The position numbers were made by a program, and so were the translations under genes. Shown here one piece after another: positions 2,404 through 26,383 of a stretch of 64,000 nucleotides of DNA (the first letter of the stretch is position 1; each line of letters opens with the position of its first letter). Origin of the DNA: Paramoeba atlantica (Eukaryota > Protista > Discosea); contig CDRNVI010000063.1 of assembly GCA_977017575.1 (NCBI GenBank), positions 372,001 to 436,000 on the forward strand. Direction: 5' to 3'. The notes beneath the pieces were generated by a model, which was not told the origin of the DNA, made no database searches, and saw nothing but the letters and a program-made list of their open reading frames with translations.

Positions 2404-2421
2404 AAAGTTTTTGTAAAGTTT

Positions 2422-2883
2422 TAAAAGTTTACGAAAAGAATTGTACAATGGAAATTTTGATTTCTGAGAATTATATTTACGTTAGTTGGCCGACGGGCAT
2501 TGTACGTTTGTTATTCATAAACTAGTTTATATAGTGACACAAAACATTATACAGTGAACTGGTAATAGAGCGCGTTTTTATCCTTTGAAACTTTTTGCCC
2601 CACCCACCAACCCCCAAACCACTCCCCGCGTGGACACCCGTTCGAGAAAGGGAGGGAAGGGAGTTCTCTCCAGGAAAAAGTTCATGAGGTATATAAAATA
2701 GATTTGATACTTACTTCGCGAAGTTGATATTACAGTACTGGTGAAGATAATGTCTTTTACTCTGTTGTCCATGATGGATGTTATATTTCGGTAGCTCTGT
2801 AGTTCTACAGATTAAACATTACAGTTTACATACGCTTACTATATCTGATTGACTATATGTTTTTCTTCCGGAAGTGCAATTCA
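2422..2883 (+). mobile_element. Solo A-B unit of the YR retrotransposon family
   Basis: Starts TAAAAGTTTACGAAAAGAATTG (A start), contains CCCACCCACC...TCCCCGCGTG (A|B junction) and ends GCAATTC (B end). Confidence 0.75.
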
Positions 2884-4461
2884 ACGAAAAAAAAAACAAC
2901 AAGCAACAAGGTACAGAAGATGACGCAACTAAGATTTTAGGAGTCTTCATAGTGGATACTGACAACGTAGACAAATGCCTAGTTCATACACTCGAAAGGC
3001 ATGACAATATTTTTCGTCGTCTAAAAACAATGGGAATGTCCAATGTTTCGCTCAGCTTACTAACAAAATGCGTCAACGTGCGACAGCAATATCAAATGAG
3101 AGTACATCACCCTGACGCCACCGAGCGCGTATCTGAGAGATTTGATAAGAACGTTGAGGCAGTGTTGGAATCGTGGTTGGGCAAGCTTCGGACACAACAA
3201 GTTGAGCTTGCTAGATTACCCCTTAAGAAAGGTGGTTTGGGGCTCACCGCGTGCAAACCCACGCGGGAAGCTGCTTACAAATCGTCTCGATATGCGGTCT
3301 TTGGGCGCCGAAAGCCTTCTACAGCTCAAAGTGGCATATCAGGGCAAATGCAAGCCAGCAACGAGCAACAAATTCCACCGGAAGACGAGATCACGACAGC
3401 TGCAAAACTACACGAAAAAGCTTGGCAAAAACTAAATCAGGATCTTCACATGAATTCGATTCTTAAAAACACGTCCAGGAAAGGTAGTTACGACTGGATT
3501 ACACCTGCGACACGATACGTATCACCACATGTCTTCTCTTTATCCGTAATGCCTCGGCTTGGAATATCACATCCGAAAATCCCACAGAATTTATTGTGTC
3601 CCGGGTGCCGGAAAATACTGGACGGACGAAGCGCCCTGATACATATCCCAGGCTGTGTGCAATGCCCAGGCTTTAACGCGACATCGAAACATAACGCCCT
3701 CGTAAAGTATATCTATGATCTATGCATCAAAACGGGGATCCCCTGTGAAAGAGAGCCACGACATTTCAGCACATGGACATGCCTCACATGCAAACGAACC
3801 GTTGACCAAGACAATCATCAATTGCACCATAAAACATGCAGTGGCAAAAATTATCACCGCTCAGGACCAGATATCTTCATATACTGGAATACGGGAGCTG
3901 TTTTCTACGACTTAACCGTGATTCACGAATTGGCAGCCACACACGCGAAGAGCCATCCAGGACAACTGATGAAAGAAGCGACTGAACGTAAAATAGAAAC
4001 GTATGTCCGATCAGGTATGATATCCGAAGAGTCGTTTCTTTGCCTACCGGTGCTCTCCTCTGGGTCACTCCACGCGAACACGCTAAACCTGATTCACGAA
4101 CTTGCAGATGCGTCGCTTACGGACAGGAACAATGCCATCTTATCATTTAAACTATTGCTACAAGAGCTAAATGGGTCACAAATTTATGCTGAACTGCGAA
4201 AGTTCTTAGCAGTAGATACGGAAGCGTCTCAAAAGGCAATTTAATACTATGAACATACGATGAGATATTTCTTATATCAATACTACACAGATTTAGATAT
4301 AGAGCTTACAAAGACGCGTAAACTCTTAGTTTTTTTACCTCCCCATCATAATGGGGGGTAGCGCCAGAACAGAAAACTTTTTAATCTAAGGTGTGAAGAT
4401 ATTTAAGGGAAAGTAACAGCAGAGGGGCGTATGTTTTCTTGGATGGCATGCAAAAAAAAAA
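2884..4461 (+). pseudogene. F2 element 3' part: RT thumb, CCHC zinc finger, RLE, 3' UTR and A-tail
   Basis: TKILGVFI, LPLKKGGLGL, CPGC..HIPGC..KHNAL, EREPR..SGPDI..DLTVIH; A-run 4452-4461. Confidence 0.88.
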
Positions 4462-5000
4462 TCATGCGCTCTCAGGCCCGCATGATGGTCTCCCGGATAG
4501 TCGTCAGTGACCCCCAAGCTCCCCTGGAAGAGGAGTAGGGCCCACAGGCATGGTCCTCTAGGGTAACAAGACGATTAGGGTGCTGGTCGCGTCGACAGAG
4601 TCTATACTCACGCCTAGCCCGCGAGGGCTAGGTACCCCAAGTGAGGTAGTACACGGGCAGTGAATCTCCTCCCCGTCGGCCAGCATCCTGTTTCGCGACC
4701 GTGTCGCTGTCGACACAGGCCCGCGCCTGCGCCCTCCCATATAGCAAGGGAAGGGTTCACAAGTCAGGCCGTGGAGTGGTCGAAAGACCCGGTCCGGAAC
4801 GCGCGAATGGATTGGATCTGGATTGCTTGTTTTTATTTTTACTGTGTCTTGTTTGTCGTATATACTTAGGGGAGATTGAATTGCTAGTTTTGGGCTGAGA
4901 AAAAAGAAAAAGAAAATATACTTCTGTGGAAATAAAAAGAATTGCTAATTTGATTGCTTGTTTTAAATTCATATACCCCCCCAATGGACCAAAAAAAAAA
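4462..5000 (+). mobile_element. F1 element 3' fragment (last ~25 codons, structured UTR, A-tail)
   Basis: MRSQARMMVSR* C-terminal motif, RNA module, T-rich tail, A10 at 4991-5000. Confidence 0.8.
4578..4810 (+). ncRNA. Conserved structured 3'-UTR RNA module, copy 1
   Basis: Near-identical to five other copies; helices GGGTGCTGGTCG/CGGCCAGCATCC, CCTAGCCC/GGGCTAGG, GGTC-GAAA-GACC. Confidence 0.75.
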
Positions 5001-6760
5001 GCAGTCCTCCATGCGTATGAATGGAACATATGCCCGCTTAGCTCCTCAGCTCGTTCACAAGTTCAACGCCCGAAACGGTATGGAGGTTTTGGTCTCCGAT
5101 CTGCATCTGCGCACCGCTCAGCGGCGTACGTGTCTTCAGTTGCTTTTGCTGCAGAGACGGATCGTTGGCTACCGTCAGATGCAGAAGGATTCTCTTCTGC
5201 AGTCCTGGACATCAATCGCCGGAGCGGAGGCCCCGTAGTTGATCCGGACACGGGAAGAGCATTAGAGGAGATCATCTCCCCTTTTCCGAAAGGATCTAGT
5301 CAAAGTACAGAAACGGACAATTCTTGCACCCCCCGTCAACGTGCCTTGAGCGACGCAATCTCGGCGCACGAATTTTCATGTGCGTACGCAGCGGCGGACA
5401 GTAGCACTCGCGCGAGGTGCACCTCTCAGACTGGAGATGGGGCCAGCAGCTGGGCATTTTGCATCCCATCAACAGAGCTTGGCCACGCTTACACACCCAC
5501 AGAATTCCGCGCCCTCTCCAGGTGGTGGTTAGGTGCCAAGGTCTACAACGAGTTGAGCACGTGCCCAATTAACACATGCCAACAACCTCTCGACCTCGAA
5601 GGAAACCATGCAGTGTCTTGCAAAAGTGGGAATGGACTGATCTCCCGCCACAATGCGCTCATTACACAATTCACCGACACGTGCTCCAAGGCGAATTTAT
5701 CACCTTCACGTGAGGTAAGCCTGGGGAACCTAGGGCCTGGCGTCTGTCCCACGAGGCCGGGCGATGTCTTTATTCCGGGCTATGAGAAAGCTCAAGGTCT
5801 GGTGCTTGATTTTGCTGTCACCCACGTTCAGCAACCTAAATACACGGACTTAGTCCGCAACGCTAACGGGGTGGCGGCAGGATCATTTGCGGAGCACTAC
5901 GCCGCTTCTCACAAGGTGAAAGAGAGAGAGGAGGCGGAACAAGCAAAACATGTATTTGTTGCCATGGTGGTAGAATCATATGGTGCTTGGAGTGCAAGTG
6001 CCCTATCAATCCTTAGATGGGTGGGGAAGCATCGCGCCTCATGCTCCCAGGGGGCTCTATCTCAAGAAGCAGCTACCCGTCAGCTGCTTCAAGAGCTTAA
6101 CCTCACCCTGATGCGTTCTCAATCGAGAATGCTTGTCTCACGCATGCCGGCTGAAGATCCACAACCGGCACTTATTTTGCAGTAGCCTAAACCAAGGCTC
6201 GCGGATCCCGGCATGTTCGAAGGCTGAGGGTGCTGGTCGCGTCGACAGAGTCTACTCACGCCTAGTCCGTCAGGGCTAGGTACCCCAAGTGAGGTAGTAC
6301 ACGGGTAGTGAATCTCCTCCCCGTCGGCCAGCATCCTGTTTCGCGACCGTGTCGCTGTCGGCACAGACCCTTTGCTTGCGCCCTCTCGTACAACAAGAGA
6401 AGGGTTCACAAGGCAAGCTGGGAGAGGTCGAAAGACCCGGTCCGGAACGCGCGAATGGTTAGGTGAAAGCCCCCCCTAGCAGAGGGAGATCTTACCCTCC
6501 CTGGAAAGTTGGAAAGATTGGTAAGGGCAAGTGGGTAAGATGGGAAAGCAGATTTGTTAGTTCTATATTTAAAAAAAAAAAGGGGGTAAGGACGGGGATG
6601 GATGAGAGGGTTAAGGGAAAGTGTGGAAAGTGGGGAGTAAGTACGGTGAAGTGGGGAGAGTAAGTACGGTGAAGTGTGAAAAGTGTGCGAAAGTGTTCGA
6701 AAAGTAGATAAAAACGTTAAACTCAATACTATTCCCCCCCCAAAAAAAAATACAAAAAAA
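5001..6760 (+). mobile_element. 5'-truncated F1 element (thumb, CCHC, RLE; stop at 6185) with UTR and A-tail
   Basis: PKRYGGFGLR, CPINTC..HAVSC..RHNAL, RPGDV..DFAVTH, VVESYG; ends CTCAATACTATTCCCCCCCC(A)n. Confidence 0.88.
6228..6458 (+). ncRNA. Structured RNA module, copy 2 (most divergent)
   Basis: Compensatory changes versus copy 1: CCC/GGG to CTC/GAG and GCCTG/CAGGC to GCTTG/CAAGC; flanks unrelated to other copies. Confidence 0.75.
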
Positions 6761-6838
6761 AACGATAAAGATACAGTTTTAACGATAAAGATACAGTTTC
6801 TGTACCTTGTTGTTTCTGTACCTTGTTGTACCTTGTTG
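6761..6838 (+). other. Spliced-leader-like sequence with nested relics
   Basis: Partial copy, then AACGATAAAGATACAGTTTCTGTACCTTGTTG (6781-6812), TTTCTGTACCTTGTTG (6813-6828), TACCTTGTTG (6829-6838); core ACAGTTTCTGTAC matches kinetoplastid/diplonemid SL exons. Confidence 0.85.
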
Positions 6839-9800
6839 ATTTATTTCCTAATCCTCTCCAAATGGTCGCGTTGACTCGCTCCGTAGCCATACGCTCGGGC
6901 CAACACATTGAAACTCCACCCTTACCTTTGTGCCACGGACATAAGAACCGCCCCCTGAAGGATTCCTTGCTTCCAAACCCCCACGACGCAAAAACTTCCC
7001 CGACGGATTCACCGGTAAAAATTTCTGATCTCCCTCGCGAAGATTCCACTAATCTTTGCAAACACATATGTAAAAACAAACTGGCATGCAAACACAGTTG
7101 TTGCAAGCGCACAGTGGAGGCGCCTATTGACAGTTCCCATCACATACATACAGTTTGCATACGTACTGGTGACGACCGTCTTCTTCATACTAAAGTACAC
7201 TAGCGTTATTGTAGGGAACGTCCTCGCCCTAGGATGCACGGTGACTTGGACAGTCGCATGCCTGGTCGGGAGCATTATATTGAAAACGCGTAGTCTGCTT
7301 TCACTTCGTTCCAAGGACGTTGCCGCACCAGGTCATGACCCCCCTGTGACGCTAAACCTCTGCACACGTAAACGAAATTGTGTCTCACCGCAACCTGCTC
7401 CCCCCACCTCGTTCTCTATTACCTTGAGCAATCCTCCTAGCTTTGAGTTATCGATTCCTGTATCCCCAACCGACGAGACTGACTCAACTCAGGAGACCGT
7501 ACTATGCGACCCTCACCGCGCTGTGACTCTAGCTGGTCCTGCAACGGAAGCTGTCGTGCCACCTCTTCATTCTGCGGGGGACCCGCCCCTCCCGGAACGT
7601 CGGTACTGTCCGGCAGACGGATGTGCGTGGTCCGCACAATCCCACGGCGGCAAATGGCAAGCTTTTTATAATCATGTGGCCTCCCGACACGCCGAAGGCA
7701 TACCGCTAGAGTGATGGGCACGTGAAGGCAGATTTCTTTGCACGGTGTGCAACAAACATTTTGTGTTGACCAAGAAGGAAGCCCATTCAATTCAATGCTA
7801 CGGGGCGGACCCACCTCCCACACAGCCATCACCAACAACAGATCTTCCTGACCCCGCGTACCCTTCAGAGACGCCAGAGGAATCTAGCTTACCGCCCACT
7901 ATAGACCCACCATGTTTCCCTAGCCTAAGAGCCGTCTGTACAACACCTATGACCACGTCCAAAGACGTTCCTTTCCGATGCCGACGCCAGTGGGCTTCGG
8001 TCCTAACAGCCACCGTCGCAACAGCCGAGAGGGAGAACACCGTCGCTGCATGGACACGACTAGCGATGCTTCCGAAATGTGTCCTTCCAGCCCCGCATAG
8101 AAGAGGACGAAAGGGAAATAGCTCGTACGCCTCCCACGTGCGGAAATGTCTGGATCGCTGGGAAGCACACGAATATTCAGCCCTGTGGAAAGAAGCTGTA
8201 CTTGAACACCAGAAGAAGAGGAAGCAAGGATCCGGAGCAGGTACACTACTGGATGAGGAAAAGAAAGCGATTCGCTCCGAACTACTGGTCCGTCAAGGAG
8301 AAGTTTCTCGAGGAATAGCTGCACTCACTTCGGCGCCAATGGCACCCGACAATGAGGAGACATATAACAAACTAGTCACCAAGCACCCGAGCCGGCTGTT
8401 CGGTCCACTACGCCAAAGCGCACCGTCCTCCAACGAAATCATTTCCTTGACTGTCAATGAGGATGATGTACGAAAGGCGATCCAAAGCTTTAACAGGGGC
8501 TCCTCAGGTGGAACCATGGCGCTACGAGCGGAACACATACAAGCGGCATTATTCGCTGGAACTGACACGGATGTTCATCCCCTCGAGAGTCTCACAAAGC
8601 TTGCCAATCACCTACTCGCCGGTAAGGCTCCAGTTGAAGCACAACAATATTACGCAGGGGCTCGATTGTGTGCATTGCAGAAAGGGCAAAATGATGTAAG
8701 ACCTATCGCAGCAGGGGAAACGTTGCGCCGCATGGTCAGCAAGGCTGCCTGCTCTGTTGTAAAGTCCAAAGCTAGCACACTTTTCCAAGGACGTCAATAT
8801 GGTGTGGCAACGGCATCTGGCTCCGAAAGGGTTATCCACCTCTGCCGCCAAGTGGTGGAGTCCACAAAGAATGACCCAGAATTTGTCTTATGCAAGGTGG
8901 ACCTTCGTAACGCATTCAATACGGTTTCCAGGGCGGCGTTCATATCCCTATCAGAAAAGCACTTCCCCGAGTTGACTCCTTGGATAAATTGGTGCTACGC
9001 CACCGATAGCGCACTCACATATGGTTCTCAAACAGTTGCCTCCACCGAAGGAGTTCAACAGGGGGACCCTTTAGGGCCCCTCCTTTTCTCCATGGTTCTG
9101 CGAGAGATTACTGAACTGATCGAGAATGAAGTGCCCAGCGGACTCCTCTTGCACCTTTGGTATCTCGATGACGGTGTTTTAGCCGGAAAATCCGACAGCG
9201 TACGGAGGGCGTTGGATGCTATAGCATGTGCGGGACCTCAGTGGGGGCTCCATCTTAATGCGAGTAAATGCGAGATAATATCTCATCCGGTATCCTCGCG
9301 TTGCACGGACTCATTCACTACCATCCCAGCCAGAATGAAAAATCACGAAGGAAACTTTAGCATCTTGGGTAGCCCAGTAGGGTCAGAAGAGTTCTGTATT
9401 GAATACCTACGTGAGTTTGCGATCGAACCTGCGGAAGCAACTCTAAAGGCGATAGGCATACTAGAAGACCCACAGGTAGCCCTCGCGCTAATTCGCTACT
9501 GCTCTGGCTTTTGCCAATTAGTCTACTCCCTCCGCACAACGCCACCAAAATACATGGTAGACCTCTGTCAGAGGCTTGATAACGCCGTGCTCCGCGCTAC
9601 GGAGCTTATACTCTGTCCTCTAGACGCCCCGGCACTAGCACAAATCCAACGCGACAAGAGACATGGTGGTTTTGGCCTAAGATCCTCCGTTATACATTCA
9701 TCTGCAGCTTATGTCTCTCCAGCAGCCTTTGCGGGTTCTCAAGATGACTGGGCACCGTCAGAGACGAAATGGTTTTCCGAGGCAGTGGAGCGTGTTAACC

Positions 9801-10903
9801 GCCAGGCGGGAAAGACTTTGGTGGATTCGACAACCGGCAAAATACAGGAGGCACTAATCCACAAAGATTATAACGCATCAACCAACCCTCTCAATGCACA
9901 CCATGATCACAGCCTAGATGCCGGGATGAATGAAAAGCTGATTATCCCGCGACAGAAACACCTTTGTCGCGAGATAGGCGACCGGGAATTTTCTTCAGCA
10001 TATGAGGCAGCAGACTGCAACACACGCGCACGTTTGATTTCGCAAACTGGGAGAGGGGCCGCGAGTTGGGCATTCGTTATTCCCTCCAAGGAGAGAGGAT
10101 ACTCTTACACTCCTACTGAGTTTCGCGCCTTGTCCCGCTGGTGGTTGGGAGCAGACATTTACCCCGGAACGCGGCCCTGTCCTATGGGGAGCTGTCAGCA
10201 ACCGTTGGGACCAAAAGGCGACCATGCCGTGTCCTGTAAGTGTGGACATGGCATCATGACGCGCCACAACGCGATGGCGTGTCAATTTGTCGATTTCTGC
10301 AGTAAGGCGCACCTCGCCCCCCAACGGGAGGTAAGTCTTGGCAATCGCGGTCCCGCTGGAGCGCCCACGAGGCCTGGTGATGTCGTTTTGCCCAGCATTG
10401 GCTTAGGCAAGTCTCTGGTGCTTGATTTCGCCGTTACCCACGTTCAGCAACCCAAATACGCGGACCTCGTCCGTAACGCTAACGGGGTGACGGCGGGATC
10501 ATTCGCCGAGAGCTATGCCACAAGCCATAAGCAGGTGCAGCGACGGGACGCCGAGACTGCTGGGCACGACTTCGCGGCCATGGTCGTAGGCTCCTATGGC
10601 TCGTGGTCCGACAGCGCCCTCGCTGTGCTTAAGAAGGTTGGAGCGTGGCGCTCTGCTACGTCCCAAGGGACGATGGACAGGGGAAAGGCGACGGCAAATC
10701 TCATCCGTGACTTGAATGTCACTTTAATGCGAGCTCAGGCTCGTATGATGGTGGCGCGGATGGCAGAAGATGACCCGGATCCACCTCTGCTCCTGAATTA
10801 GAGGGTGATGCACTTTTTTTTCTTTTTCTTTTCTTTGGCTTGGTTTCGTCAAATAGAGTGATTTGTTGTAGATTGATTTATAGAGATAAATTTGAAAAAA
10901 AAA
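6839..10903 (+). mobile_element. Full-length F1 CRE-clade retrotransposon
   Basis: SL-headed; N-terminal ORF pieces 6864-7203 and 7127-7714 (one frameshift, one in-frame TGA), long RT-RLE ORF, A-tail 10895-10903. Confidence 0.9.
7745..10801 (+). CDS. RT + CCHC + restriction-like endonuclease polyprotein (F1)
   Basis: VRPIAAGETLRR, KVDLRNAFN, QQGDPLGPLLF, WYLDDG, CPMGSC..HAVSC..RHNA, RPGDV..DFAVTH, VVGSYG; uninterrupted 1018 aa. Confidence 0.92.
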   Translation: MCNKHFVLTKKEAHSIQCYGADPPPTQPSPTTDLPDPAYPSETPEESSLPPTIDPPCFPSLRAVCTTPMTTSKDVPFRCRRQWASVLTATVATAERENTVAAWTRLAMLPKCVLPAPHRRGRKGNSSYASHVRKCLDRWEAHEYSALWKEAVLEHQKKRKQGSGAGTLLDEEKKAIRSELLVRQGEVSRGIAALTSAPMAPDNEETYNKLVTKHPSRLFGPLRQSAPSSNEIISLTVNEDDVRKAIQSFNRGSSGGTMALRAEHIQAALFAGTDTDVHPLESLTKLANHLLAGKAPVEAQQYYAGARLCALQKGQNDVRPIAAGETLRRMVSKAACSVVKSKASTLFQGRQYGVATASGSERVIHLCRQVVESTKNDPEFVLCKVDLRNAFNTVSRAAFISLSEKHFPELTPWINWCYATDSALTYGSQTVASTEGVQQGDPLGPLLFSMVLREITELIENEVPSGLLLHLWYLDDGVLAGKSDSVRRALDAIACAGPQWGLHLNASKCEIISHPVSSRCTDSFTTIPARMKNHEGNFSILGSPVGSEEFCIEYLREFAIEPAEATLKAIGILEDPQVALALIRYCSGFCQLVYSLRTTPPKYMVDLCQRLDNAVLRATELILCPLDAPALAQIQRDKRHGGFGLRSSVIHSSAAYVSPAAFAGSQDDWAPSETKWFSEAVERVNRQAGKTLVDSTTGKIQEALIHKDYNASTNPLNAHHDHSLDAGMNEKLIIPRQKHLCREIGDREFSSAYEAADCNTRARLISQTGRGAASWAFVIPSKERGYSYTPTEFRALSRWWLGADIYPGTRPCPMGSCQQPLGPKGDHAVSCKCGHGIMTRHNAMACQFVDFCSKAHLAPQREVSLGNRGPAGAPTRPGDVVLPSIGLGKSLVLDFAVTHVQQPKYADLVRNANGVTAGSFAESYATSHKQVQRRDAETAGHDFAAMVVGSYGSWSDSALAVLKKVGAWRSATSQGTMDRGKATANLIRDLNVTLMRAQARMMVARMAEDDPDPPLLLN

Positions 10904-10969
10904 TCGCGGGAAAAAGAGCCGCAGCATGTAAGGGTGATATGTCCGAGCAAGCGTCAATGTTTTTTCTTC

Positions 10970-11709
10970 TCCAGGACATGAACGTTACGCTCATGCGGTC
11001 TCAGGCACGAATGCTTGTAAGACGCATGGCAGACGTGGATATCCATGCCAGGCTCGCTTTCCTGCACGAGGCACCCTCTGACACCACACCAAATCGTGCC
11101 AGCGGCGGTCCGGCAGGAGCGATCGAGCCTACAGTGCCTATTCTCACGCCTCGCCTTCGTGAGTGAGGTACCCCAATGTGAGATAGGTAGGGATTCGGTC
11201 TGACAGTCCTATTTCAGCACGAAGACGCCATGGTATCCAGGACGGGTGCTGGTCGGGTCGACAGAGTCTATGCTCACGCCTAGCCCGCGAGGGCTAGGTA
11301 CCCCAAGTGAGGTAGTACACGGGTAGTGAATCTCCTCCCCGTTGGCCAGCATCTTGTTTCGCGACCGTGTCGCTGTCGACACAGGCCCGCGCCTGCGCCC
11401 TCCCATATAACAAGGGAAGGGTTCACAAGTCAGGCCGTGGAGAGGTCGAAAGACCCGGTCCGGAACGCGCGAATGGATTGGGAATGGATTGCTTGTTTTA
11501 ATTTTTACTGTTTTTCTTGTTTGTAGTATGTACTTAGGGGAGACTAAATTGCTAGTTTTGGGCTGAGAAAAAAGATACACCTGTGGAAAGAAAAAAGAAT
11601 TGCTAATTTGATTGCTTGTTTTCAACTCGTATACCCCCCAATGGACATACTTGGTTCGTCTACTGGGTCAAAATATAGAGGCAATGCCGCGATTCATAAA
11701 AAAAAAAAA
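10970..11709 (+). mobile_element. F1 3' fragment with structured UTR and A-tail
   Basis: DMNVTLMRSQARMLVRR C-terminus, RNA module, tail ending GGCAATGCCGCG..(A)n. Confidence 0.75.
11244..11476 (+). ncRNA. Structured RNA module, copy 3
   Basis: Near-identical to copy 1. Confidence 0.75.
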
Positions 11710-11924
11710 CTGATACCGTACATTCATAGAAAGTTAGAACTCATACTCTTCCCCCCAATTAATTGCAAAAAAATAAATAAATTAAAAGCAAGAAAAAAAT
11801 TCAAAAAAGTGTACACCCTCAAAAATTGTCTAGTCATTAGAGTAAAAAAAAAAAAAACAAACTTACTGACAGGTCTGCAGGCAGGTGAAATCGAATAAAA
11901 AAAAAAAAAAAAGGGAGGAATCAC

Positions 11925-12760
11925 CCTCCCTTTCTTTGCCGAGCACTACGCACAGACCAAAGCGAGACAGCGACAGGAAGCAACCGAGGCCGGGTTTCTT
12001 TTCACAGCCATGGTTGTGGAATCATTTGGCTCCTGGAGTGAGAGTGCCTTAGCGCTCCTCCGCGACATCGGAACGCAACGAGCGAACGCGTCGAAAGAAC
12101 TCATGTCTCGCAGCCAAGCACGAAATGAACTCCTTACGGAGCTGAACGTTGCGTTAATGAGATCACAAGCCAGAATGATGGTTTCGCGTATCTGCGTGCC
12201 AGATCCAACGGATCCAATGGTAGCGACATAGGCCTATACCTACGGACCCGCTTCTATCCTCTCTTGCATCCTCTGGTCCGGATGTTGGTCGTGTCGACAG
12301 AGTCTATACTCACGCCTAGCCCGCGAGGGCTAGGTACCCGAAGTGAGGTAGTACACGGGCAGTGAATCTCCTCCCCGTCGGCCAGCATCCTGTTTCGCGA
12401 CCGTGTCGCTGTCGACACAGGCCCGCGCCTGCGCCCTCCCGTATAGCAAGGGAAGGGTTCACAAGTCAGGCCGTGGAGAGGTCGAAAGACCCGGTCCGGA
12501 ACGCGCGAATGGATTGGATCTGGATTGCTTGTTTTTATTTTTACTGTGTCTTGTTTGTAGTATATACTTAGGGGTGATTAAATTGCTAGTTTTGGGCTGA
12601 GAAAAAGTAAAGGTACATCTGTGGAAAGAAAAAGAATTGCTAATTTGATTGCTTGTTTACAAATCATATACCCCTCCCCAATGGACCTACTTGGTTCGTC
12701 TACTGGGTAAAAATATAGAGGCAATGCCGCGTTTTATACTTCTCCCCCCTAAAAAAAATC
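11925..12760 (+). mobile_element. F1 3' fragment (same subfamily as 16470-17570)
   Basis: 11937-12290 is nearly identical to 17276-17630. Confidence 0.82.
12280..12512 (+). ncRNA. Structured RNA module, copy 4
   Basis: Near-identical to copy 1. Confidence 0.75.
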
Positions 12761-12854
12761 TTAATACAAAAAGTGATCTTAATACAAAAAGTGATCTTAA
12801 CACCAAAGAAGCTAACAGGCACTTGTTGCTTTCTTTTAGTTATTCTTATTTCTT

Positions 12855-13058
12855 CATGGGAGTGGTCACCCGCCCCAAGGCAAAGGAAACAGGAGCAGCT
12901 CCTGTGATTTTGCCTCTCGCCCCCGTTCGCCGCAGGAAAAAGACAGCGCCTGTTGCCCCAAAGTCTCCTCCAACCATCGCTGTCGTGGGGACGCATCCGA
13001 CCGCTTCGCCCTCAAAGAGGTCTCCACCCCCCGCACCATCGACGCCATCGCCACCTCT
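12855..13058 (+). pseudogene. F2 N-terminal fragment (MGVVTRPKAK, Pro-rich)
   Basis: Duplicate of ~26385-26556. Confidence 0.7.
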
Positions 13059-13060
13059 TT

Positions 13061-13092
13061 AACGATAAAGATACAGTTTCTGTACCTTGTTG
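13061..13092 (+). other. Spliced-leader-like sequence at element 5' end
   Basis: AACGATAAAGATACAGTTTCTGTACCTTGTTG, 80 nt upstream of ATG 13173; no GT intron follows. Confidence 0.85.
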
Positions 13093-15819
13093 ACTATATT
13101 TTATCTCATATTTTTCCCGGGTACACGGCTACCTTAATATCCGGAGACCACCACTTTGAAGAGTCAACTCGAATGGAAGAAGATTCGTTCCTGCAAGAAG
13201 AAGCAGCGCACCAACCAGGATCCTGGGACCAAATTGCGGGGAATGCTCACCTAATCAAACAGCCCACCTCATATAACGAATTGCTATACACCACACCGAT
13301 CCCGGAAAGCATCCCTGAAGACTGGTGTCAGAAAGCCACCTTAATTTCGACTGACCAGCAAACACCAGACACTGGACACAGAAATGACGGCGACGAGGAA
13401 ACGACCCACGCACGCGTTCTCATCAGCACAAATCACAGCTCACGAACAACACAACCCACTAATGTTTCAGTTTCGAAAAAATTTTCCCGTCGCAAGTCAC
13501 CGGCCACATCTCCGTGTGCTAAAGGACAAATTCGGGGCATTGGGAAATCTCAGAAGACGCGACAGAAAACCAACACAAGAACAATGGAAGCGATCGACCA
13601 TAGTATCCCACATAGTCCATACGATAGCGACCTTCCGGAGACTATATCACAAACAACGACCCTCGAAACCCCAACGCCGACAGGTGACGAAACCACTACG
13701 AACATACCGAGCTCTCAAGAAGGCCCTAGGCAACGGGAGTGTCCCGCAGAAAACTGTAATTGGAAAGCACACGCCCACGGAGGGCAATGGCAATCGTATT
13801 ATAGCCATGTGGCTTATCGACACGGAGGGAGCATTCCCAGCATCTGGTGGGATAACGAAGGACGCTTCTTGTGCAACGAATGTGGACGGCATTATGCGTC
13901 CAGCAAGAAGACATCACACGAGAATCAATGCAAAGGACAATCTGTGCAGCCAGCTTCTTCCCCGCACCCATCAGAACCCCTAGGGGAAACTTTTTACGAC
14001 GTTCACGGCACCAACGATATACCATCATTGGACGAAATATGCACGACTTCAATCAGCACCTGTAAGGACGTCCCGCATCGATGCCGATATTTGTGGACCA
14101 AAATTTTGACTACAGCCCTTTCCTCCGCGGTGCACGAAAATTCAGTAAGGGCGTGGACGCTCCTGGCAATACTCCCGAAATGCGTTCTACCAGCCCCTTA
14201 CCGCGGCGGTCGCAAAGCTCACACGTCATATTCCTCGTATATTCTCAAGCGAATGGAGCTTTGGATTGAAGGAAAATACGCAACCTTATGGTCCGAAGCG
14301 ATTAGGGACAACGAAAGGAAACGTTCGAAGCAACAGAGCAATGAGAATGTGGAGGATAAATCTCAGATACGATCAGAACTTTTGGTCCGTCAGGGAGAAT
14401 ATTCGAGAGGCATGGCCGCCCTTACTGCAGCGCCACTTGCGCCGTACAATGAGGAAACTCTGCAAAAGCTACAAAAAAAGCACCCCAGTCCTCACGCAAA
14501 CCCTATATCCAGTCCCCTACCTCCTTTGCAAGTGGATGTTTTGCAGCTCGACGAATCTGAGGTCAAAAAGGCAGTCAATAGTTTCCACCGTGGGTCCTCT
14601 GCTGGAACCATGGGGCTTAGACCTGAACACCTCCAAACAGCACTTCAGGAGCACGTTGACCACAACATGGACCCTCTCATGACACTCACTTCCTTTGTGA
14701 ATCACCTGCTAGCTGGCAAAGCTCCAGACGAAGTACACCCCTTCTTTGCTGGTGCACGGCTCTGCGCTCTCGAAAAGGGGAATGATGACGTGCGACCTAT
14801 AGCTGCAGGAGAAACCCTTCGACGTCTCGTAAGCAAGGCAGTGTGTCTCTCAATTAAACAAAAAGCAGGTTCCTTTTTCGGACGCAAACAGTATGGGGTT
14901 GCAGCGGCTGCTGGAGCAGAACGGGTAATCCACCTTTGCCGCCGGCTAATGCGGAACAACATGGAGAACGACAACATCACCTTTTGCAAAGTGGACCTCA
15001 GGAACGCCTTCAACAACGTAAGTAGGCCGGTTTTTATTTTCCTGACACGCGAACATTTTCCTGAAATATCGCCATGGGTCGAATGGTGCTACGGAAACCA
15101 CAGCTGTCTCACGTTCGGTGACGATTTCATTCCTTCGGCGGAAGGCGTGCAACAAGGGGATCCGTTAGGCCCTCTTCTCTTCTCTTTGGCCCTAGCAGAG
15201 GTAACGAAGGAAATAGCGTCCCGCTCTCACTTACGAACACAGTTGTGGTATCTCGACGACGGCATACTTGTAGGCGAACCGAGTGAAGTCCGGAAGGCCC
15301 TAGACATCCTCGATGAGATAGGGCCGAAGTGCGGGCTTTTCCTAAACCTCACCAAGTGTGAGATTATTACTCCTCCAGCTTCAGCCCACACCTCCGTTTT
15401 CTTCCCCGATATCCCGAGCGAGAAAATCCGCTACGATGGGAACTTCGACACCCTTGGAAGCCCCATTGGCTCTGCGGAGCACTGTATGGAATTCCTAGAG
15501 ACACACGCGATTGAGCCAGCCCGGGATACATTGGAAGCTACCGCAGTGTTAGAAGACCCGCAAGTGGCCCTCGCGCTAATACGGCAATGTGCAGGATTTT
15601 GTCAAATGGTATATGCACTACGCACAACCCCACCACAACCCCACCACAAGCCGTCAAGGAATTATGCCAACGGCTTGATTCATATTTGCTCAACGCTGTG
15701 GAACATGCAATTTCCCACCTGGACCTCTCCGCTCGCGACCAAATCCAACGACCGAAACGCCACGGGGGGTTCGGACTCCGCTCATCATTGCTCCACCAGT
15801 CAGCTGCATATGTTTCCTC

Positions 15820-16442
15820 GGTTAAACTGAACCAATATTCGCAAATTTATGAATTTTCAAAATTTCACGTCCCTTATATGCGCTGAGGCCATGAGGGAAT
15901 CCAGCCATTGACGCAATTTAATCACCGTTTTTTCGCTTACCTCCGTTTCCGCCACTGAAGACACATGGCGCCCACCCCTACAGTACAAAACGATGTACAT
16001 GAGAGTCTGTTTAGCGCTTCGCTGGCTCTTGCTGGGCAACAGCGGCCCCATAGCTCCATACCTCCCTTTACAATGCTTGGTGCAGACCCATTTATTCCCG
16101 ACTAATGCCATGGTGTGCGGAGCTCTGTGATTTTTCTTGTAGCAAATAACTTTCTGCGCCACTAGAGAGTGGTTTTTCATCCAGTCCAGACATTGATTCT
16201 CACTCCAGGAAGAACTTCTTCTGATCGTAAGTTTCGAACGGCACGAGAACCCACCGCACCCAGTGCATGTCATTAAAAGGTGAGAAGAGCACTAAACAAG
16301 TACTAATGGATTCAAAAAACTCAATGCTTATATAAAATTAATGTGCAGAACCATGATTCAGAATAAAAGAAAGGAGCGATAAAACGTTCAGGTAAAAATT
16401 TTGCCAGATTGAGAAAAGTGCGAATATTGGTTCAGTTTCACC
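15820..16442 (-). mobile_element. Merlin/IS1016-like DNA transposon, internally deleted
   Basis: 24-bp TIRs GGT(T/G)AAACTGAACCAATATTCGCA; 8-bp TSD GTTTCCTC (15812-15819, 16443-16450); internal Cys-rich/HTH-like ORF remnant 15857-16273. Confidence 0.8.
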
Positions 16443-17618
16443 GTTTCCTCTATCACTTTTTCTGCTAACATGGATGGCTGGGAACCAACCGAAGCAGAAG
16501 GATTCTCTGATTCCGTCCGGGACATAAACGAAAAAGTCGGAGCTGATCTAGTTGACACGATCACTGGACGCATTGCCAAACCCAATTCTCTAGCTGAACA
16601 GCATGAGGGACGAGGCACCCGGTCCCGCCTAGCTAAACGAAAATATACCACATCTCTCAACAACACTCTCCCCTCCGACTCCACCGAACAGGAAACCATT
16701 ATACCACGACAGAGGCATCTCAGCCATGCAATATCGGAAAATGAATTCCAGGCTGCGTACATGAAAACAGACGCAAGGACGAGGGCACGATGGGTTTCTC
16801 AATCAGGGAGGGGGGCCGGAAACTGGGCTTTTGTAACACCGTCCAAGAGCAGAAGCTACGCTTTTACCCACACAGAGTTTCGGACTCTGACACGCTGGTG
16901 GCTCGGGATGAATATCTTGCCGGAGGATCAACCTTGCCCAGCTGACGGCTGCACCCTTCCCTTACTTAAAAATGGAGAGCACGCTTTGCTCTGTAAGAAT
17001 GGACACGGTATAATCTCACGACATAATGCCGTAGCGCAACAATTTACGTCCTTTTGCAGCAAAGCTTTCCTTCAACCACAGAGAGAGAAGAGTTTGGGAA
17101 ATCGAGGGCCAGGAGGAGCTCTCACAAGACCAGCGGACGTCTTCCTACCAACTGCATCCTTAGCCAAGGGCACTGTAGCGCAAGGCATGGTTCTAGATTT
17201 TGCGGTCACCCACGCACAGCAACTAAAGTATTTGGACTCAGTCCATAATGCTAGCTGGGTGGCCCCAGGGTCTTTTGCCGAGCACTATGCACAGACCAAA
17301 GCGAGACAGCGACAGGAAGCAACCGAGGCCGGGTTTCTTTTCACAGCCATGGTTGTGGAATCATTTGGCTCCTGGAGTGAGAGTGCCTTAGCGCTCCTCC
17401 GCGACATCGGAACGCAACGAGCGAACGCGTCGAAAGAACTCATGTCTCGCAGCCAAGCACGAAATGAACTCCTTACGAAGCTGAACGTTGCGTTAATGAG
17501 ATCACAAGCCAGAATGATGGTTTCGCGTATCTGCGTGCCAGATCCAACGGATCCAATGGTAGCGACATAGGCCTATACCTACGGACCCGCTTCTATCCTC
17601 TCTTGCATCCTCTGGTCC

Positions 17619-17851
17619 GGATGTTGGTCGGGTCGACAGAGTCTATACTCACGCCTAGCCCGCGAGGGCTAGGTACCCGAAGTGAGGTAGTACACGGGCA
17701 GTGAATCTCCTCCCCGTCGGCCAGCATCCTGTTTCGCGACCGTGTCGCTGTCGACACAGGCCCGCGCCTGCGCCCTCCCGTATAGCAAGGGAAGGGTTCA
17801 CAAGTCAGGCCGTGGAGAGGTCGAAAGACCCGGTCCGGAACGCGCGAATGG
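17619..17851 (+). ncRNA. Structured RNA module, copy 5
   Basis: Near-identical to copy 4. Confidence 0.75.
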
Positions 17852-18061
17852 ATTGGGCCTGGATTGCTTGTTTTTATTGTTATTGTTTTTATTGTTCTTA
17901 TACTTACGGGAGATCGAATTGCTAGTTTTGGGCTCCAAAATATGAAATTGCTAATTTGATTGCTTGTTTTAAAATCATATACCCCCCCCCGATGGACCTA
18001 CAGGGTTCAAGTATTGGGTAAAAATATAGAGGCAATGCCGCGTTTCAAAAAAAAAAAGGTT

Positions 18062-18093
18062 AACGATAAAGATACAGTTTCTGTACCTTGTTG
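18062..18093 (+). other. Spliced-leader-like sequence at element 5' end
   Basis: Exact 32-mer, 4 nt after the previous element's A-tail and 46 nt before ATG 18140. Confidence 0.85.
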
Positions 18094-21000
18094 AATTATT
18101 TTCCTTATTTCATCTTTTTCCAGGTACGCGGTTCCTTCCATGACCAGCCAAAAGTCTTTCCAAGAAGAAAAAAAAAGGCACACACTTGGTTCCTGGGATC
18201 AATTCGAGGGTAACAAACATTTAATATCCGGCCCCAGCACCTACAACGAACTTGCCTACACCACCGAGATCCCTGCGCACGTTCCATCCGAATGGACCAG
18301 ACGAACGGAAGCAGCATGTGCCACTTTGGTTGTCGAGGGGGGGACGCCCGACATGGGAATCGAATTAGGGGAGTGTGAAGAGTCAAACCACGCCAGCGTT
18401 CAGCGACAACCTCCCGATAGTTCCTCAGTTCGCCGTTTTCCAAAGACACCCAGAAAAACGAATAGGATGTCACAGGACTCCATCGTTCTCCGAGGGGAGC
18501 TAAAAGGATACAGAAAAACGCCAGTTGGCCGACGAGCCCCCGAGAAACATAACTCTAATGGTAGAAAACCGGCACCTGATAAGGAAGTTCTACCTGCAAT
18601 GGATCTTGATGAAGCATGTTTGACACAGCCATCCGCAACTCAAACACAATCAGCCGCCGCCGAACCACCGAATCACTCTCCCTCTCACGATGAAGCTGTA
18701 CCTTATTTCCAATCATCACAACAACGAAGAGCCTGCCCAGCACCCGGCTGCAATTGGGACGCGCCATCACACGGTGGAAGTTGGCAAGCATACTTCAACC
18801 ACATTGCCTCGCAACATGGAGACAGTGTTCCGGATTCATGGTGGAGAGAAGAAGGCCGTTTCCGATGCCACACATGCAATCGCCACTACGACTTAGGGAA
18901 AGAACACTCACACTCGAAGAGCTGTAAAATCGCATCTCACATCCCTTGCCAAGAGGAGGTGAACCCACAAGCTGTAAACCCGACACAAGAGAACGACGTC
19001 ATCGAATATCTTCCAACATTGGCCGAGATTAGTGCTCTCCCTCGCGCAACTTGCAAGGATATTCCTCACCGGTGTCGGCTACAGTGGGCACGTGTCCTCA
19101 CGACTACCCTTAAGGAGGCCCTGGGTAGCACTGGTGTAGGAGGATGGGCTAAGCTCGCAATGCTCCCAAAGTGCACCCTAGCAGCACCCCGAAGGGGCGG
19201 GCGCAAAGGGCACATGTCTTACGCGTCACATGTAAGTAACTGCCTCGAACGCTGGGAGATGGGAGACGTCTCCGGCCTCTGGAAAAAACTAATTGTTGAA
19301 CAAGAGAAAAGGTCGCCTCGCAAAGAACCTGACGAGCATTCACTTGAGGAAGAGATGCGAAAGGCCAACCTACGCGCCGAGCTTTTAGTTCGACAAGGCG
19401 AATTTTCACGGGGATTGGCAGCACTTACTGCGGATCCTCTCGCACCAGATAACGACGACACTCTTTCCCAGCTCCTGCTTAAACACCCCACCCGTCACAC
19501 CACTGAGCCGCCCGTAGATATGCCTCCCCTAGGCCCGGAGGTGCTTACACTCGGAGAAACGGATGTACGACACGCACTAAAAGGTTTTCACCGAGGATCA
19601 TCCAGCGGGACTGTGGGGCTGCGGGCAGAACACCTTCAAGCTGCACTACTCGTCAATGAAGATCTCGACGTCACACCGCTCTCTGCACTAACAGCTCTCA
19701 CGAATCATCTCCTCGAAGGCAAAGCCCCGTTGGACGTGCAAGAAGCGTTTGCTGGCGCGCGGCTGTGTGCACTCAGAAAAGGGGAGAGTGGTGTACGACC
19801 GATAGCTGCCGGGGAGACATTACGCCGTTTGACTAGCAAAGCAGCATGTCTAGCAGTACGAACGAAGGCACGTGAACTTTTCGCCGGAACACAATTTGGG
19901 GTAGCCACACCTGCTGGAGCTGAGCGTCTAATTCACCTTTGTCGAAAAGCAATGCACGAAAATTCTGAGAACTCCGATTTCGTCCTCTGTAAAGTAGATC
20001 TGAAGAACGCGTTCAACAATGTTTCTCGTGCCGCCTTCATTGCGTTGACACGACATTACTTTCCAGAGCTTTCACGCTGGGTGGAGTGGTGCTACGGTAC
20101 TACAAGTGCTCTGACCTATGGCCAAATCCGAATTTCATCCGAGGAAGGCGCGCAACAAGGCGACCCCTTAGGGCCACTACTTTTTTCCCTCGTCATGCTC
20201 CAAGTTTCGGAAGAAATTAAAACTTCGTCCGGAGGACTTCAGCTCCACATGTGGTACCTTGACGACGGAGTCTTGGCAGGTCCATCATACGAAGTACAAA
20301 ATGCTCTGCGCGTGATAGCGGACGTGGGGCCTAAGTGTTTCTCAACCCGGAGAAGTGCGAAATTATCACCCACCCTGCTTCAGCAATGCAGACAGACATT
20401 TTTTATCAAATCCCTCGCGAACAAAAGAATTTCCAAGGCAATTTTTCTATTCTTGGGAGCCCCATAGGTTCTTCCGAATTTTGTCGTACCTACCTAGAGG
20501 AACATGCAATCGACCCCGCTGTAGACACTCTCCTGGCAATACAAAGCCTAGAAGACCCACAAGTTGCCCTTTCGCTACTTCGTCAATGTGCCGGATTTTG
20601 CCAAATGACGTATGCACTGCGTACAACACCTTTTCGTAAACTCATGGACTTATGCACTCGCCTTGACTCAGCAACAATGAAAACTCTCGAATGGATTTTC
20701 TGTCCTTTGGATGATGTTTCCAGGTGTCAGGCACAGCGACTGAAGAAACATGGGGGATTTGGCATTCGTTCATCCGAGCTACATGCCTCCGGGGCTTATA
20801 TTTCTTCAGTGACATTCGGCGCCGAGCAAGACTCCTGGGAACCGCAAGAAGCAGAAGGTTTCGAAGATGCAGTTCATGACTTCAACAACGCACTAGGCAT
20901 CACGTTACTTGACCGGACCACAGGATCTATCACCAACAGCCAACAAGATAATCGCCAAACGAGTAACGACATCGAGGCGGATTTACCGGAAGGAACCTAT

Positions 21001-21474
21001 GCCTCGGAGAAATGCACAGTACCACGGCAAAAACAGTTAAGCCACATTATTTCAGAACACGAATTCGGGCAAGCATTCTACAACGCAGACATTAAGACCC
21101 GAACTCGCTGGATTTCACAGTCTGGCAAGGGAGCTGGGGACTGGGCATTTTCCACTCCATCCAAAGACCTTGGTTTTGCATTCACATCAGCTGAATTCCG
21201 CGCACTGGTAAGGTGGTGGCTCGGAGCACAACTTGTACCCAGCGTCCAACCATGTCCCATAGAAAAATGTAAAATGTCTATCGGACTCGATGGGGACCAC
21301 GCTCTAGTGTGCAAATCTGGACATGGCATCATGGCACGACATAACTCTCTTTGTCTACAGTTTGCGCAAGAGTGTAGTAAGGCGCAGCTGGCTCCTCAGA
21401 GGGAAAAGACGCTAGGAAATCATGGTCCGGGAGGCGGCTTGACACGACCAGGTGACGTTTACTTGCCAAACTAT

Positions 21475-21662
21475 GACCTTGGCACAGCTCTCGTCCTTGA
21501 CTTCGCAGTTACACATGTCCAGCAAAACAAATATACGGACTTAGTCCGAACTGCTACATGGGTAAAGGGACCTTGGCACAGCTCTCGTCCTTGACTTCGC
21601 AGTTACACATGTCCAGCAAAACAAATATACGGACTTAGTCCGAACTGCTACATGGGTAAAGG
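21475..21662 (+). repeat. 94-bp tandem duplication in the RLE coding region
   Basis: GACCTTGGCACAGCTC...GGTAAAGG occurs twice in tandem. Confidence 0.9.
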
Positions 21663-22020
21663 GGTCATTCGCCGAGCGCTACGCCTCGGAACATAAAATA
21701 TCGGAGAGAGCAGAAGCTGTCGCTGCTGGTCACCGTTTTGAAGCGATGGTCGTAGAATCCTTTGGATCCTGGTCCAAAAGTGCCCTGACCATCATAAAAA
21801 GCGTCGGGAAACACCAAGCTTCAACCTCTAATGGGACTTTGAGCCATGCACAGGCCACAGCACAACTCATAAGGGGTATGAACATAGCCCTCATGCGTTC
21901 ACAGGCACGGATGTTGGTCCGACGTCTCCCGGATGAAGATCCCACTGGCCAACTCGTCACACATGACGACCGGCTGGATTCATTCCGAACTGGTCGTTTG
22001 CGCCCATGAACATCTGGTCG

Positions 22021-22253
22021 GGATGCTGGTCGCGTCGACAGAGTCTATGCTCACGCCTAGTCCGTCAGGGCTAGGTACCCCAAGTGAGGTAGTACACGGG
22101 TAGTGAATCTCCTCCCCGTCGACCAGCATCCTGTTTCGCGACCGTGTCGCTGTCGACACAGGCCCGCGCCTGCGCCCTCCCATATAGCAAGGGAAGGGTT
22201 CACAAGTCAGGCCGTGGAGAGGTCGAAAGACCCGGTCCGGAACGCGCGAATGG
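22021..22253 (+). ncRNA. Structured RNA module, copy 6
   Basis: GGATGCTGGTCG/CGACCAGCATCC is a perfect 12-bp helix here. Confidence 0.75.
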
Positions 22254-22486
22254 ATTGGGCCTGGATTGCTTGTTTTTATTGTTATTGTTTTTATTGTTCT
22301 TATACTTACGGGAGATCGAATTGCTAGTTTTGGGCTCCAAAATATGAAATTGCTAGTTTAATTGCTTGTTTTAAAATCATATACCCCCCCGATGGACCTA
22401 CAGGGTTCAAGTATTGGGTAAAAATATAGAGGCAATGCCGCAAAAAAAAAAGCCATTCCCTACAATTCGTCCGCGGCAGGGTCGCT

Positions 22487-26230: not shown

Positions 26231-26383
26231 CCGAAATGAACGTCACGTTGATGAGGGCCCAGGCGGGCATGCTAGTTAATGCTAGTTAATCGCATGCCCG
26301 CAGAAGATTTGTATCCGCCATTACGCACGTAATGGCGAGGAAAGTAGGGAAAGTTCGAAGTTGAAAGTTGTAAAAAAAAAAAA

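Follow-up and report, generated by a model that had tools for sequence, protein, structure and literature searches.

What kind of sequence is a block of some 233 nucleotides (nt) that stands behind the reading frames of several retrotransposons and is far better conserved than those frames? The question is raised by a 64,000-nt stretch of DNA from Paramoeba atlantica (contig CDRNVI010000063.1, positions 372,001 to 436,000; this whole stretch is called the window), in which positions 1-30000 are a head-to-tail array of retrotransposons without long terminal repeats (non-LTR) on the + strand. We find that the block is a new structured RNA family, present neither in Rfam nor in the literature searched. 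Reasoning by analogy with the R2 retrotransposons, we think it probable that the block, a cis-acting, two-domain RNA of the 3' untranslated region (UTR), is a module by which the reverse transcriptase (RT) or its ribonucleoprotein (RNP) recognizes the template for target-primed reverse transcription (TPRT).

Copies of the block and the elements that carry them

A preliminary description, made from the letters of the window alone, had placed six copies and had judged them more similar to one another than their open reading frames (ORFs). All six were recovered by blastn at those positions on the + strand, and a self-comparison of the window bore out the contrast in similarity. The copies are listed here by window position (block nt 1 is window 4578), with the type names explained below and the one RT frame to which the text returns.

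4578-4812, + strand: copy 1, main type, the reference for the identities of the other copies
6228-6460, + strand: copy 2, a chimera of main-type domain 1 and B-type domain 2, with both flanks different
7745-10801, + strand: RT ORF of the copy 3 element, 1018 amino acids, Pfam RVT_1
11244-11478, + strand: copy 3, main type, behind the 1018-amino-acid RT ORF
12280-12514, + strand: copy 4, main type, in a 5'-truncated element beginning near 11935
17619-17853, + strand: copy 5, main type, 48 nt past the stop of the ORF at 16470-17570
22021-22255, + strand: copy 6, main type, 11 nt past the stop at 22007-22009

Identity to copy 1 is 90.6-97.4% across 231-235 nt (E-values 1e-88 to 1e-121), as against 66-71% for the upstream ORF DNA of the same elements, with the exception of copies 4 and 5, which represent one lineage. 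In copies behind an intact ORF the block begins 11-81 nt after the last stop codon, and for those copies the earlier estimate of about 10-80 nt stands; poly(A) follows 110-250 nt downstream, and all copies are placed in the 3' UTR. Copy 2 has the block alone in common with the others, as had been noticed, and because its flanks differ on both sides the borders can be fixed at GG(A/G)TG... and ...GCGCGAATGG. The block is non-coding: there are stops in all three sense frames, the variation has no clear codon periodicity, and the single open antisense frame is broken by indels between variants. Many lineages, though not all, carry CUGGUC(C/G) in the 7-8 nt before the block (for example at 12272-12279 and 22013-22020), a direct repeat of block nt 6-11 that could compete for the 3' strand of the first helix, P1.

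RVT_1 is present in the long ORFs of the array, the closest solved relative of the element protein is the Bombyx R2 protein R2Bm (8gh6), and the alignment of relatives displays a conserved C-terminal CCHC motif and the R-PAD...D-FAVTH (PD..D) endonuclease motifs of the restriction-like endonuclease (RLE) class. A full spliced-leader-like sequence with the core ACAGTTTCTGTACC, which we take to be the conserved kinetoplastid core, lies between the poly(A) of one element and the next element at ~6793, 13073 and 18074. From their sequences, the host elements are classed as R2-like (RLE-class) non-LTR retrotransposons linked to a spliced leader. The arrangement suggests complete copying of trans-spliced element RNA, up to the very 5' end, and insertion of new copies beside a resident leader, which builds head-to-tail arrays. 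The spliced-leader-like sequence (...AACGATAAAGATACAGTTTCTGTACCTTGTTG) occupies 6730-6840, 13060-13100 and 18058-18095, between poly(A) and the next 5' UTR, and at 6770-6840 it consists of nested partial repeats.

The same ENA assembly, ERZ24900291, encodes many relatives of the RT ORF (49-60% protein identity), and more distant ones (29-42%) occur in other metagenomes. Twelve contigs around the relatives in ERZ24900291 were fetched together with 80 metagenome loci, and the block was sought with nhmmer and with R1, a covariance model built for this analysis; the portion of the genome examined amounts to ~300 kb, ~240 kb of it in loci other than the window. More than 30 copies were found by the two methods, every one in ERZ24900291, and all of them lie in sense orientation after the end or stop codon of an ORF and before poly(A). 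For alignment and folding we used 26 distinct full copies of three types. The main type (22 copies) is at least 94% identical within itself, the B-type (L009:4247 and L001:1890) is 83-87% identical to it, and the L3-type (L003:13219 and four near-identical copies in L092) is 75-78% identical to it.

Neither nhmmer nor R1 found a homologue of the block in 82 loci of RT relatives (29-42% identity) from the metagenomes of other organisms, and the invariant 24-mer GGAGNGGTCGANAGACCCGGTCCG has no exact match in metagenome, prokaryote-genome or viral collections. One relative, at L008, has a 3' UTR of its own of ~195 nt, unrelated in sequence and ending in poly(A). With Rfam 15 no family reaches the gathering score anywhere in the window, and permissive E-values on copy 1 and on the variant loci return trivial hairpin matches only.

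Fold of the block on the sense strand

The fold was obtained from the 26 sequences by RNAalifold and single-sequence folding, followed by a curated structure. It comprises two domains and nine helices with 74 pairs, and 98.5% of the cells in these pairs are paired.

4578-4688, + strand: domain 1
4690-4800, + strand: domain 2
4578-4589/4677-4688 (nt 1-12/100-111): P1
4591-4598 (nt 14-21): joiner S1, GUCGACAG
4600-4611/4641-4652 (nt 23-34/64-75): P2
4612-4620/4625-4633 (nt 35-43/48-56): P3
4653-4657/4672-4676 (nt 76-80/95-99): P4
4690-4701/4790-4800 (nt 113-124/213-223): P5
4702-4706/4711-4715 (nt 125-129/134-138): P6
4725-4730/4763-4769 (nt 148-153/186-192): P7
4731-4738/4748-4756 (nt 154-161/171-179): P8
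4778-4781/4786-4789 (nt 201-204/209-212): P9, with a GAAA loop

Every helix of the preliminary description is present in this fold, recovered either by RNAalifold or by the curated structure. Double-sided pair changes number 7, against 2.1 +/- 1.2 in column shuffles (0/500), and slid registers give at most 1. The compensatory changes reported at the outset (CCC/GGG to CUC/GAG and GCCUG/CAGGC to GCUUG/CAAGC) are real but belong to a single variant lineage, with one event each; the covariation exceeds the shuffles, but it comes from only three or four lineages. For the L3 lineage, further compensatory changes, in P2, P3 and P4, come from a structure-aware alignment and from a relic of the L3-type (described below). 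The same helices P2-P9 also form when the L3-type, which diverges most, is folded alone, and the loop of P9 is always of the GNRA kind (GAAA or GAGA).

The pattern of variation within the main type points the same way. Across its 22 copies 13 of 148 paired positions are variable, compared with 16 of the 87 that are unpaired (Fisher p = 0.04). The paired-site variants common to at least two copies, five in number with 27 instances, all retain the pair through G.U/A-U or C-G/U.G, and the same wobble changes on the other strand are A.C mismatches. Singletons at paired sites break the pair in 6 of 9 cases, as expected of decay after insertion. The folding z is -4.2 for the sense strand and -3.0 for the antisense strand. 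We conclude that the RNA fold is under selection on the sense strand.

Two other pairings of the fold were considered and set aside. RNAalifold offers an alternative domain 2, in which long-range GUC/GAC and UCGAC/GUCGA helices replace P6 and P9; it gives C-A at the place where the hairpin shows a change from U-A to C-G, and it is also ruled out by the retained GNRA loop of P9 and by the folding of the L3-type alone into hairpins. A loop-loop pairing of 83-88 with 178-183 is doubtful, being compensatory in two lineages, broken in a third and in conflict with the long P4 of the L3-type.

The complementarity of an upstream ACAG with a CTGT loop, which had been noticed as a possible pseudoknot, is real and reaches 8 bp, between GUCGACAG (14-21) and CUGUCGAC (130-137). 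This pairing and the hairpin P6 are mutually exclusive, and both survive the same substitutions: in the B-type and the L3-type a change of A136 to G is accompanied by C for U at both 15 and 127, and the U.G intermediate is seen in the chimeric copy 2. In the L3-type the segment 14-21 is no longer a palindrome, and it is still the exact complement of 130-137. Mutually exclusive helices of this kind suggest, as far as the structural model goes, a switch, a pseudoknot between the domains or a pairing between molecules. It is conceivable, though quite improbable, that the block represents a new class of large functional RNA spreading horizontally, in which P6 and the 14-21/130-137 helix form a switch that gates RNP assembly or dimerisation, or which is a ribozyme unrelated to known classes.

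Exchange of the block between reverse transcriptase lineages

Eight RT lineages whose proteins are 49-60% identical carry blocks that are 94-99% identical, and the 200 nt after the block range in these lineages from unrelated (52%) to 95% identical. One and the same 3' border meets at least four different tails, and one 5' border meets several unrelated upstream contexts. In the window five of the six copies also have a T-rich tail in common, which extends ~230 nt further, up to the poly(A). The tails and the relic of an older block are the following.

4813-4990, + strand: copy 1 tail, main-type T-rich, shortened, with a poly(A) end
6461-6581, + strand: copy 2 tail, G/A-rich, unrelated to the main tail, poly(A) at 6571-6581
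11121-11192, + strand: relic left by domain 1 of an older L3-type block, covering model positions 8-85; the complete copy 3 follows ~50 nt downstream
11479-11707, + strand: copy 3 tail, main type, up to poly(A)
12515-12738, + strand: copy 4 tail, main type
17854-18057, + strand: copy 5 tail, main type, up to poly(A), with the spliced-leader-like sequence directly after it (core 18074-18087)
22256-22451, + strand: copy 6 tail, main type, up to poly(A)

Recombinant forms are visible at several levels. Copy 2 (6228) is a chimera at the level of domains, as listed above. The relic of an L3-type domain 1 stands ~50 nt upstream of a complete main-type block both in copy 3 and in its counterpart in L001, and we read it from the sequence as the trace of a replacement of the 3' module. 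Between window 10897-11707 and the P0002 element (L001:13571-14375) the last 800 nt are 97% identical and the proteins before them only 54%; the match takes in the last ~90 codons of the ORF and, after them, relic, block and tail, and the shared end is a recombinant 3' end with its junction inside the ORF. The elements with copies 5 and 6 have common sequence only from 8 nt before the block. The exchange junctions are thus scattered (~-350, -8 and inside the block), and the stretch between the block borders is the minimum that is always retained. These observations show that the cassette is exchanged between RT lineages. It would have spread by template switching during reverse transcription, or by recombination or conversion between neighbours in the arrays, and as a result one main version would now serve at least eight lineages with proteins about half identical.

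The tails between block and poly(A) are of low complexity and specific to the type. Main-type tails are T-rich, contain GATTGCTTGTTTT twice and have a polypyrimidine run followed by AG; B- and L3-type tails are G/A-rich with repeats of ~20 nt (for example L003:13459-13684 and window 6461-6581).

The arrays offer some further observations. After copy 6 the window holds two more R2-like elements (ORFs 22487-26230 and 26361-29833), neither with a block behind it in the window; the first is apparently cut off ~150 nt past its stop by the 5' end of the second, which is 99% identical to 12882-13057. Whole elements are tandemly repeated in L004 (ctg3706c, 1-18396) and in L092 (ctg3673c), with periods of ~4.47 kb and ~4.0 kb, and the unit in L004 is a full element plus a 5'-truncated copy of 584 nt; the names of both contigs end in 'c', perhaps a sign that the repeats were closed into circles in assembly. 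In a soil metagenome (Ga0126373), one RT relative contains the exact spliced leader core (L062:1560-1573), which hints at related spliced-leader-associated elements in uncultured kinetoplastids.

Since head-to-tail arrays make conversion likely, one could imagine that the block has no specific function and is a GC-rich hitch-hiker kept uniform by gene conversion between array neighbours. Its GC content of 62%, compared with roughly 50% in the array and with the T-rich tail, could partly reflect GC-biased conversion. Substitutions nevertheless respect the sense-strand fold, through compensatory and wobble changes and fewer variants at paired sites, the L3 and B types retain the same helices at 76-85% identity, and the borders stay exact while both flanks are replaced, so that we regard this explanation as highly improbable.

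Of the alternatives, the earlier suggestion that the block heads a parasitic short RNA fares worst; an RNA of this sort would be a separate unit of block, tail and poly(A) using a borrowed RT. Units of 584 nt to 1 kb with little beyond block and tail do lie between full elements (window 11935-12738 and L004 4640-5230), yet each begins with 20-370 nt of the 3' end of an ORF, at differing start points, which is ordinary 5' truncation. The 5'-truncated copies as a whole start at scattered points, from -367 to -20 upstream and at model positions 58, 99, 152, 159 and 206; among the more than 30 copies none begins at block nt 1, there is no recurrent internal start site, and no unit has a spliced leader joined to the block. 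A parasitic RNA of this kind is hardly credible on this evidence.

A probable role in template recognition, and its alternatives

The preliminary description also pointed to a partial resemblance to ribozymes of the hepatitis delta virus (HDV)/CPEB3 type. If the block were a self-cleaving ribozyme, whether of a heavily elaborated HDV-like form or of a new class, the transcript would be cut at the block or inside it; a compact, strongly conserved fold of many helices with a possible pseudoknot between domains would suit this reading, as would the fact that other retroelements carry ribozymes. The likeness in detail consists of the G start of P1, a C/U-rich loop before the 3' strand of P1 and the GCGAAUGG end. 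It does not withstand comparison among the copies. The P1 of HDV-like ribozymes is short, ~7 bp, and begins at the cleavage site, usually with a G.U pair, whereas P1 of the block is 12 bp long and opens with a G-C pair in 22 of the 26 copies. The catalytic core of the family has an L3 loop, a P1.1 made with the nucleotides directly behind P1, and a conserved C in J4/2; in the block P1 is followed by UGU and not by GG, and there is nothing able to form P1.1. In HDV-like ribozymes P2 arises when the segment after the 5' strand of P1 pairs with the 3' end and closes the outer pseudoknot (PMC4908430). The sole candidate for it here, AGUCUAU 22-28 with AUGGAUU 230-236, makes 7/7 pairs only in copies with the main tail; it drops to 6/7 in the B-type (with an internal U.U), 5/7 in copies with the third tail, 4/7 in copy 2 and 3/7 in the L3-type, and it competes with the helix 23-28/69-75, which is kept in every lineage. 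An unbiased scan found no conserved helix of at least 5 bp that uses the 3' end of the block. We also rejected a second mapping, modelled on the large HDV-like ribozymes (PMC4908430), in which the long arm takes the part of a J1/2 peripheral domain, since it leaves no room for a 5' strand of P2 and provides no partner at the 3' end.

The L3-type adds a further difficulty, as CGAAUGG is replaced there by CACUGCUGG, and the UCCCCGU loop, the supposed P3/L3, by a plain 9-bp hairpin whose loop has 7 nt. This type has multiplied recently: its five copies are nearly identical, and where the surroundings were examined, a long ORF ends just before the copy and 5'-truncated daughters occur in the vicinity. 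Searches against the ribozyme families of Rfam 15 gave no hit, whether on the window (gathering score), on copy 1 (E <= 10) or on the loci with the L3 and B variants (E <= 1). In the genomic copies ORF, block, tail and poly(A) are always contiguous, and a cut between ORF and poly(A) would harm both translation and TPRT. Neither the scattered 5' ends of truncated copies, none of which lies at nt 1, nor the exchange junctions mark one fixed site. Taken together these results make a ribozyme very unlikely.

A role in binding the RT, which the preliminary description had named among its possibilities, is favoured by the evidence, albeit by analogy. R2 proteins selectively bind a structured 3' UTR of ~210-250 nt as the template for TPRT, and in the bird/turtle clade of R2 a pseudoknot in the 3' UTR is essential (PMC11194090, PMC12180492). 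Such 3' UTRs have little sequence conservation between R2 clades (PMC12180492), and the missing Rfam match therefore has no bearing on function. We favour template recognition because the host elements are of an R2-like class, the block lies in the 3' UTR in sense orientation, its structure is selected on the sense strand, it is a discrete module, and its exchange is visible. By the same analogy the partner of the block would be the RT and its role would lie in the choice of template. As the block starts 11-81 nt past the stop codon, the first block that a new protein encounters at the end of translation would be that of its own mRNA; having bound there, the protein would begin to make cDNA from the poly(A), which lies 110-250 nt further downstream. 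A short distance to the stop codon, with a variable one to poly(A), suggests in this way that the protein is captured on its own mRNA.

The same distances can be accounted for differently. If the block were bound by a conserved host factor or the ribosome, acting in mRNA stability, export, termination, protection from decay or in holding the RNA at the site of translation, one would understand why the distance to the stop is constrained while the distance to poly(A) and the sequence of the tail vary freely, and how one sequence can serve RTs that are 49-60% identical, which is easy if a single host protein is the partner. The block is however not seen outside these retrotransposons in the window or in the ~240 kb of other loci, the solved R2 relatives use 3' UTR RNA of this kind for RT binding (PMC11194090, PMC12180492), and the tails are also common to many lineages, so that recent exchange explains the identity without a host partner. 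We consider a host factor a possible partner, but an unlikely one.

Several points weigh against recognition by the RT, for which the argument is one of analogy. The R2 3' UTR adjoins the target junction, whereas the block does not reach the 3' end of the RNA, and the distance that is kept constant is the one to the stop codon, which would also suit termination, RNA stability, export or a host factor. Near-identity across half-diverged RTs is unlike one-to-one coevolution of RT and RNA, and needs recent sweeps or a conserved partner, maybe other than the RT. Only three or four lineages, all from one genome, account for the double changes, which represent few independent events, and no passenger resembling a short interspersed element (SINE), non-autonomous and equipped with the block, was found in the ~300 kb examined.

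If the cassette is indeed a handle for the RT, it would be a compact template-choice signal of ~225 nt in an R2-like branch outside animals, helpful in comparing how such enzymes pick their RNA and possibly for RNA-templated insertion tools built on R2 proteins. One cassette in at least eight half-diverged RT lineages, with chimeras caught in the act, amounts to a natural experiment on the exchange and sweeps of 3' modules. To the structured RNAs known to date the block adds a family absent from Rfam, with a testable pair of mutually exclusive helices.

Among known systems, the tails of stringent long interspersed elements (LINEs), which need a 3' stem-loop (PMC4176376), and the common 3' ends of LINEs and SINEs (zebrafish ZfL2, eel UnaL2; PMC4176376, PMC3747384) resemble the block as RNA at the 3' end that acts in cis in RT recognition, and identical 3' modules on different elements imply a common machinery. 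Theirs are single short stem-loops by terminal repeats, in contrast to the two-domain fold of 225 nt, which is common to autonomous lineages; no SINE partner was found in the ~300 kb examined, where all the short units are 5'-truncated autonomous copies. The HDV-like ribozymes of retrotransposons (R2, L1Tc/ingi; PMC3185411, PMC3774820, PMC4908430) have in common with the block the link to retrotransposons, a first helix that is long and begins with G, a loop rich in pyrimidines immediately ahead of the 3' strand of P1 and, in the main type only, a 3' end like GCGAAUGG. They stand at the 5' end of the element RNA and depend on a nested double pseudoknot (P2, P1.1), while the block follows the stop codon, has no conserved P2 and no P1.1, and lacks the supposed catalytic motif in an active variant.

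Like the elements studied here, CRE1, CRE2, SLACS and CZAR of trypanosomatids (PMC12278014, PMC5814959) are of the RLE class, belong to a kinetoplastid-type organism, have an association with the spliced leader and end in poly(A), but they split the leader, and here a whole leader precedes each element. No named SLACS or CZAR protein occurs among the best 120 RT matches, and the literature searched describes no structured 3' cassette for CRE1, CRE2, SLACS or CZAR, or for spliced-leader-associated elements at large.

The closest parallel is the 3' UTR RNA of R2 (248 nt in Bombyx; pseudoknot, hinge and stem in birds and turtles; PMC11194090, PMC12180492, PMC10499050), which is also a structured RNA of ~200-250 nt in the 3' UTR of an RLE-class element, with a fold kept more than the sequence across variants and a possible pseudoknot, and the protein of our elements is nearest to R2Bm among solved structures. 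The block differs from it in matching no Rfam family by sequence or covariance model, in being internal, with a variable tail of 110-250 nt before the poly(A) rather than a place at the target junction or the 3' terminus, and in having two multi-helix domains that are nearly unchanged across many divergent RT lineages. By this analogy the block is of a kind already known from the 3' UTRs of non-LTR retrotransposons, that of structured recognition elements, and it goes beyond the textbook case in its near-identical sharing among many half-diverged autonomous lineages, its visible chimeras and its mutually exclusive, covarying helices.

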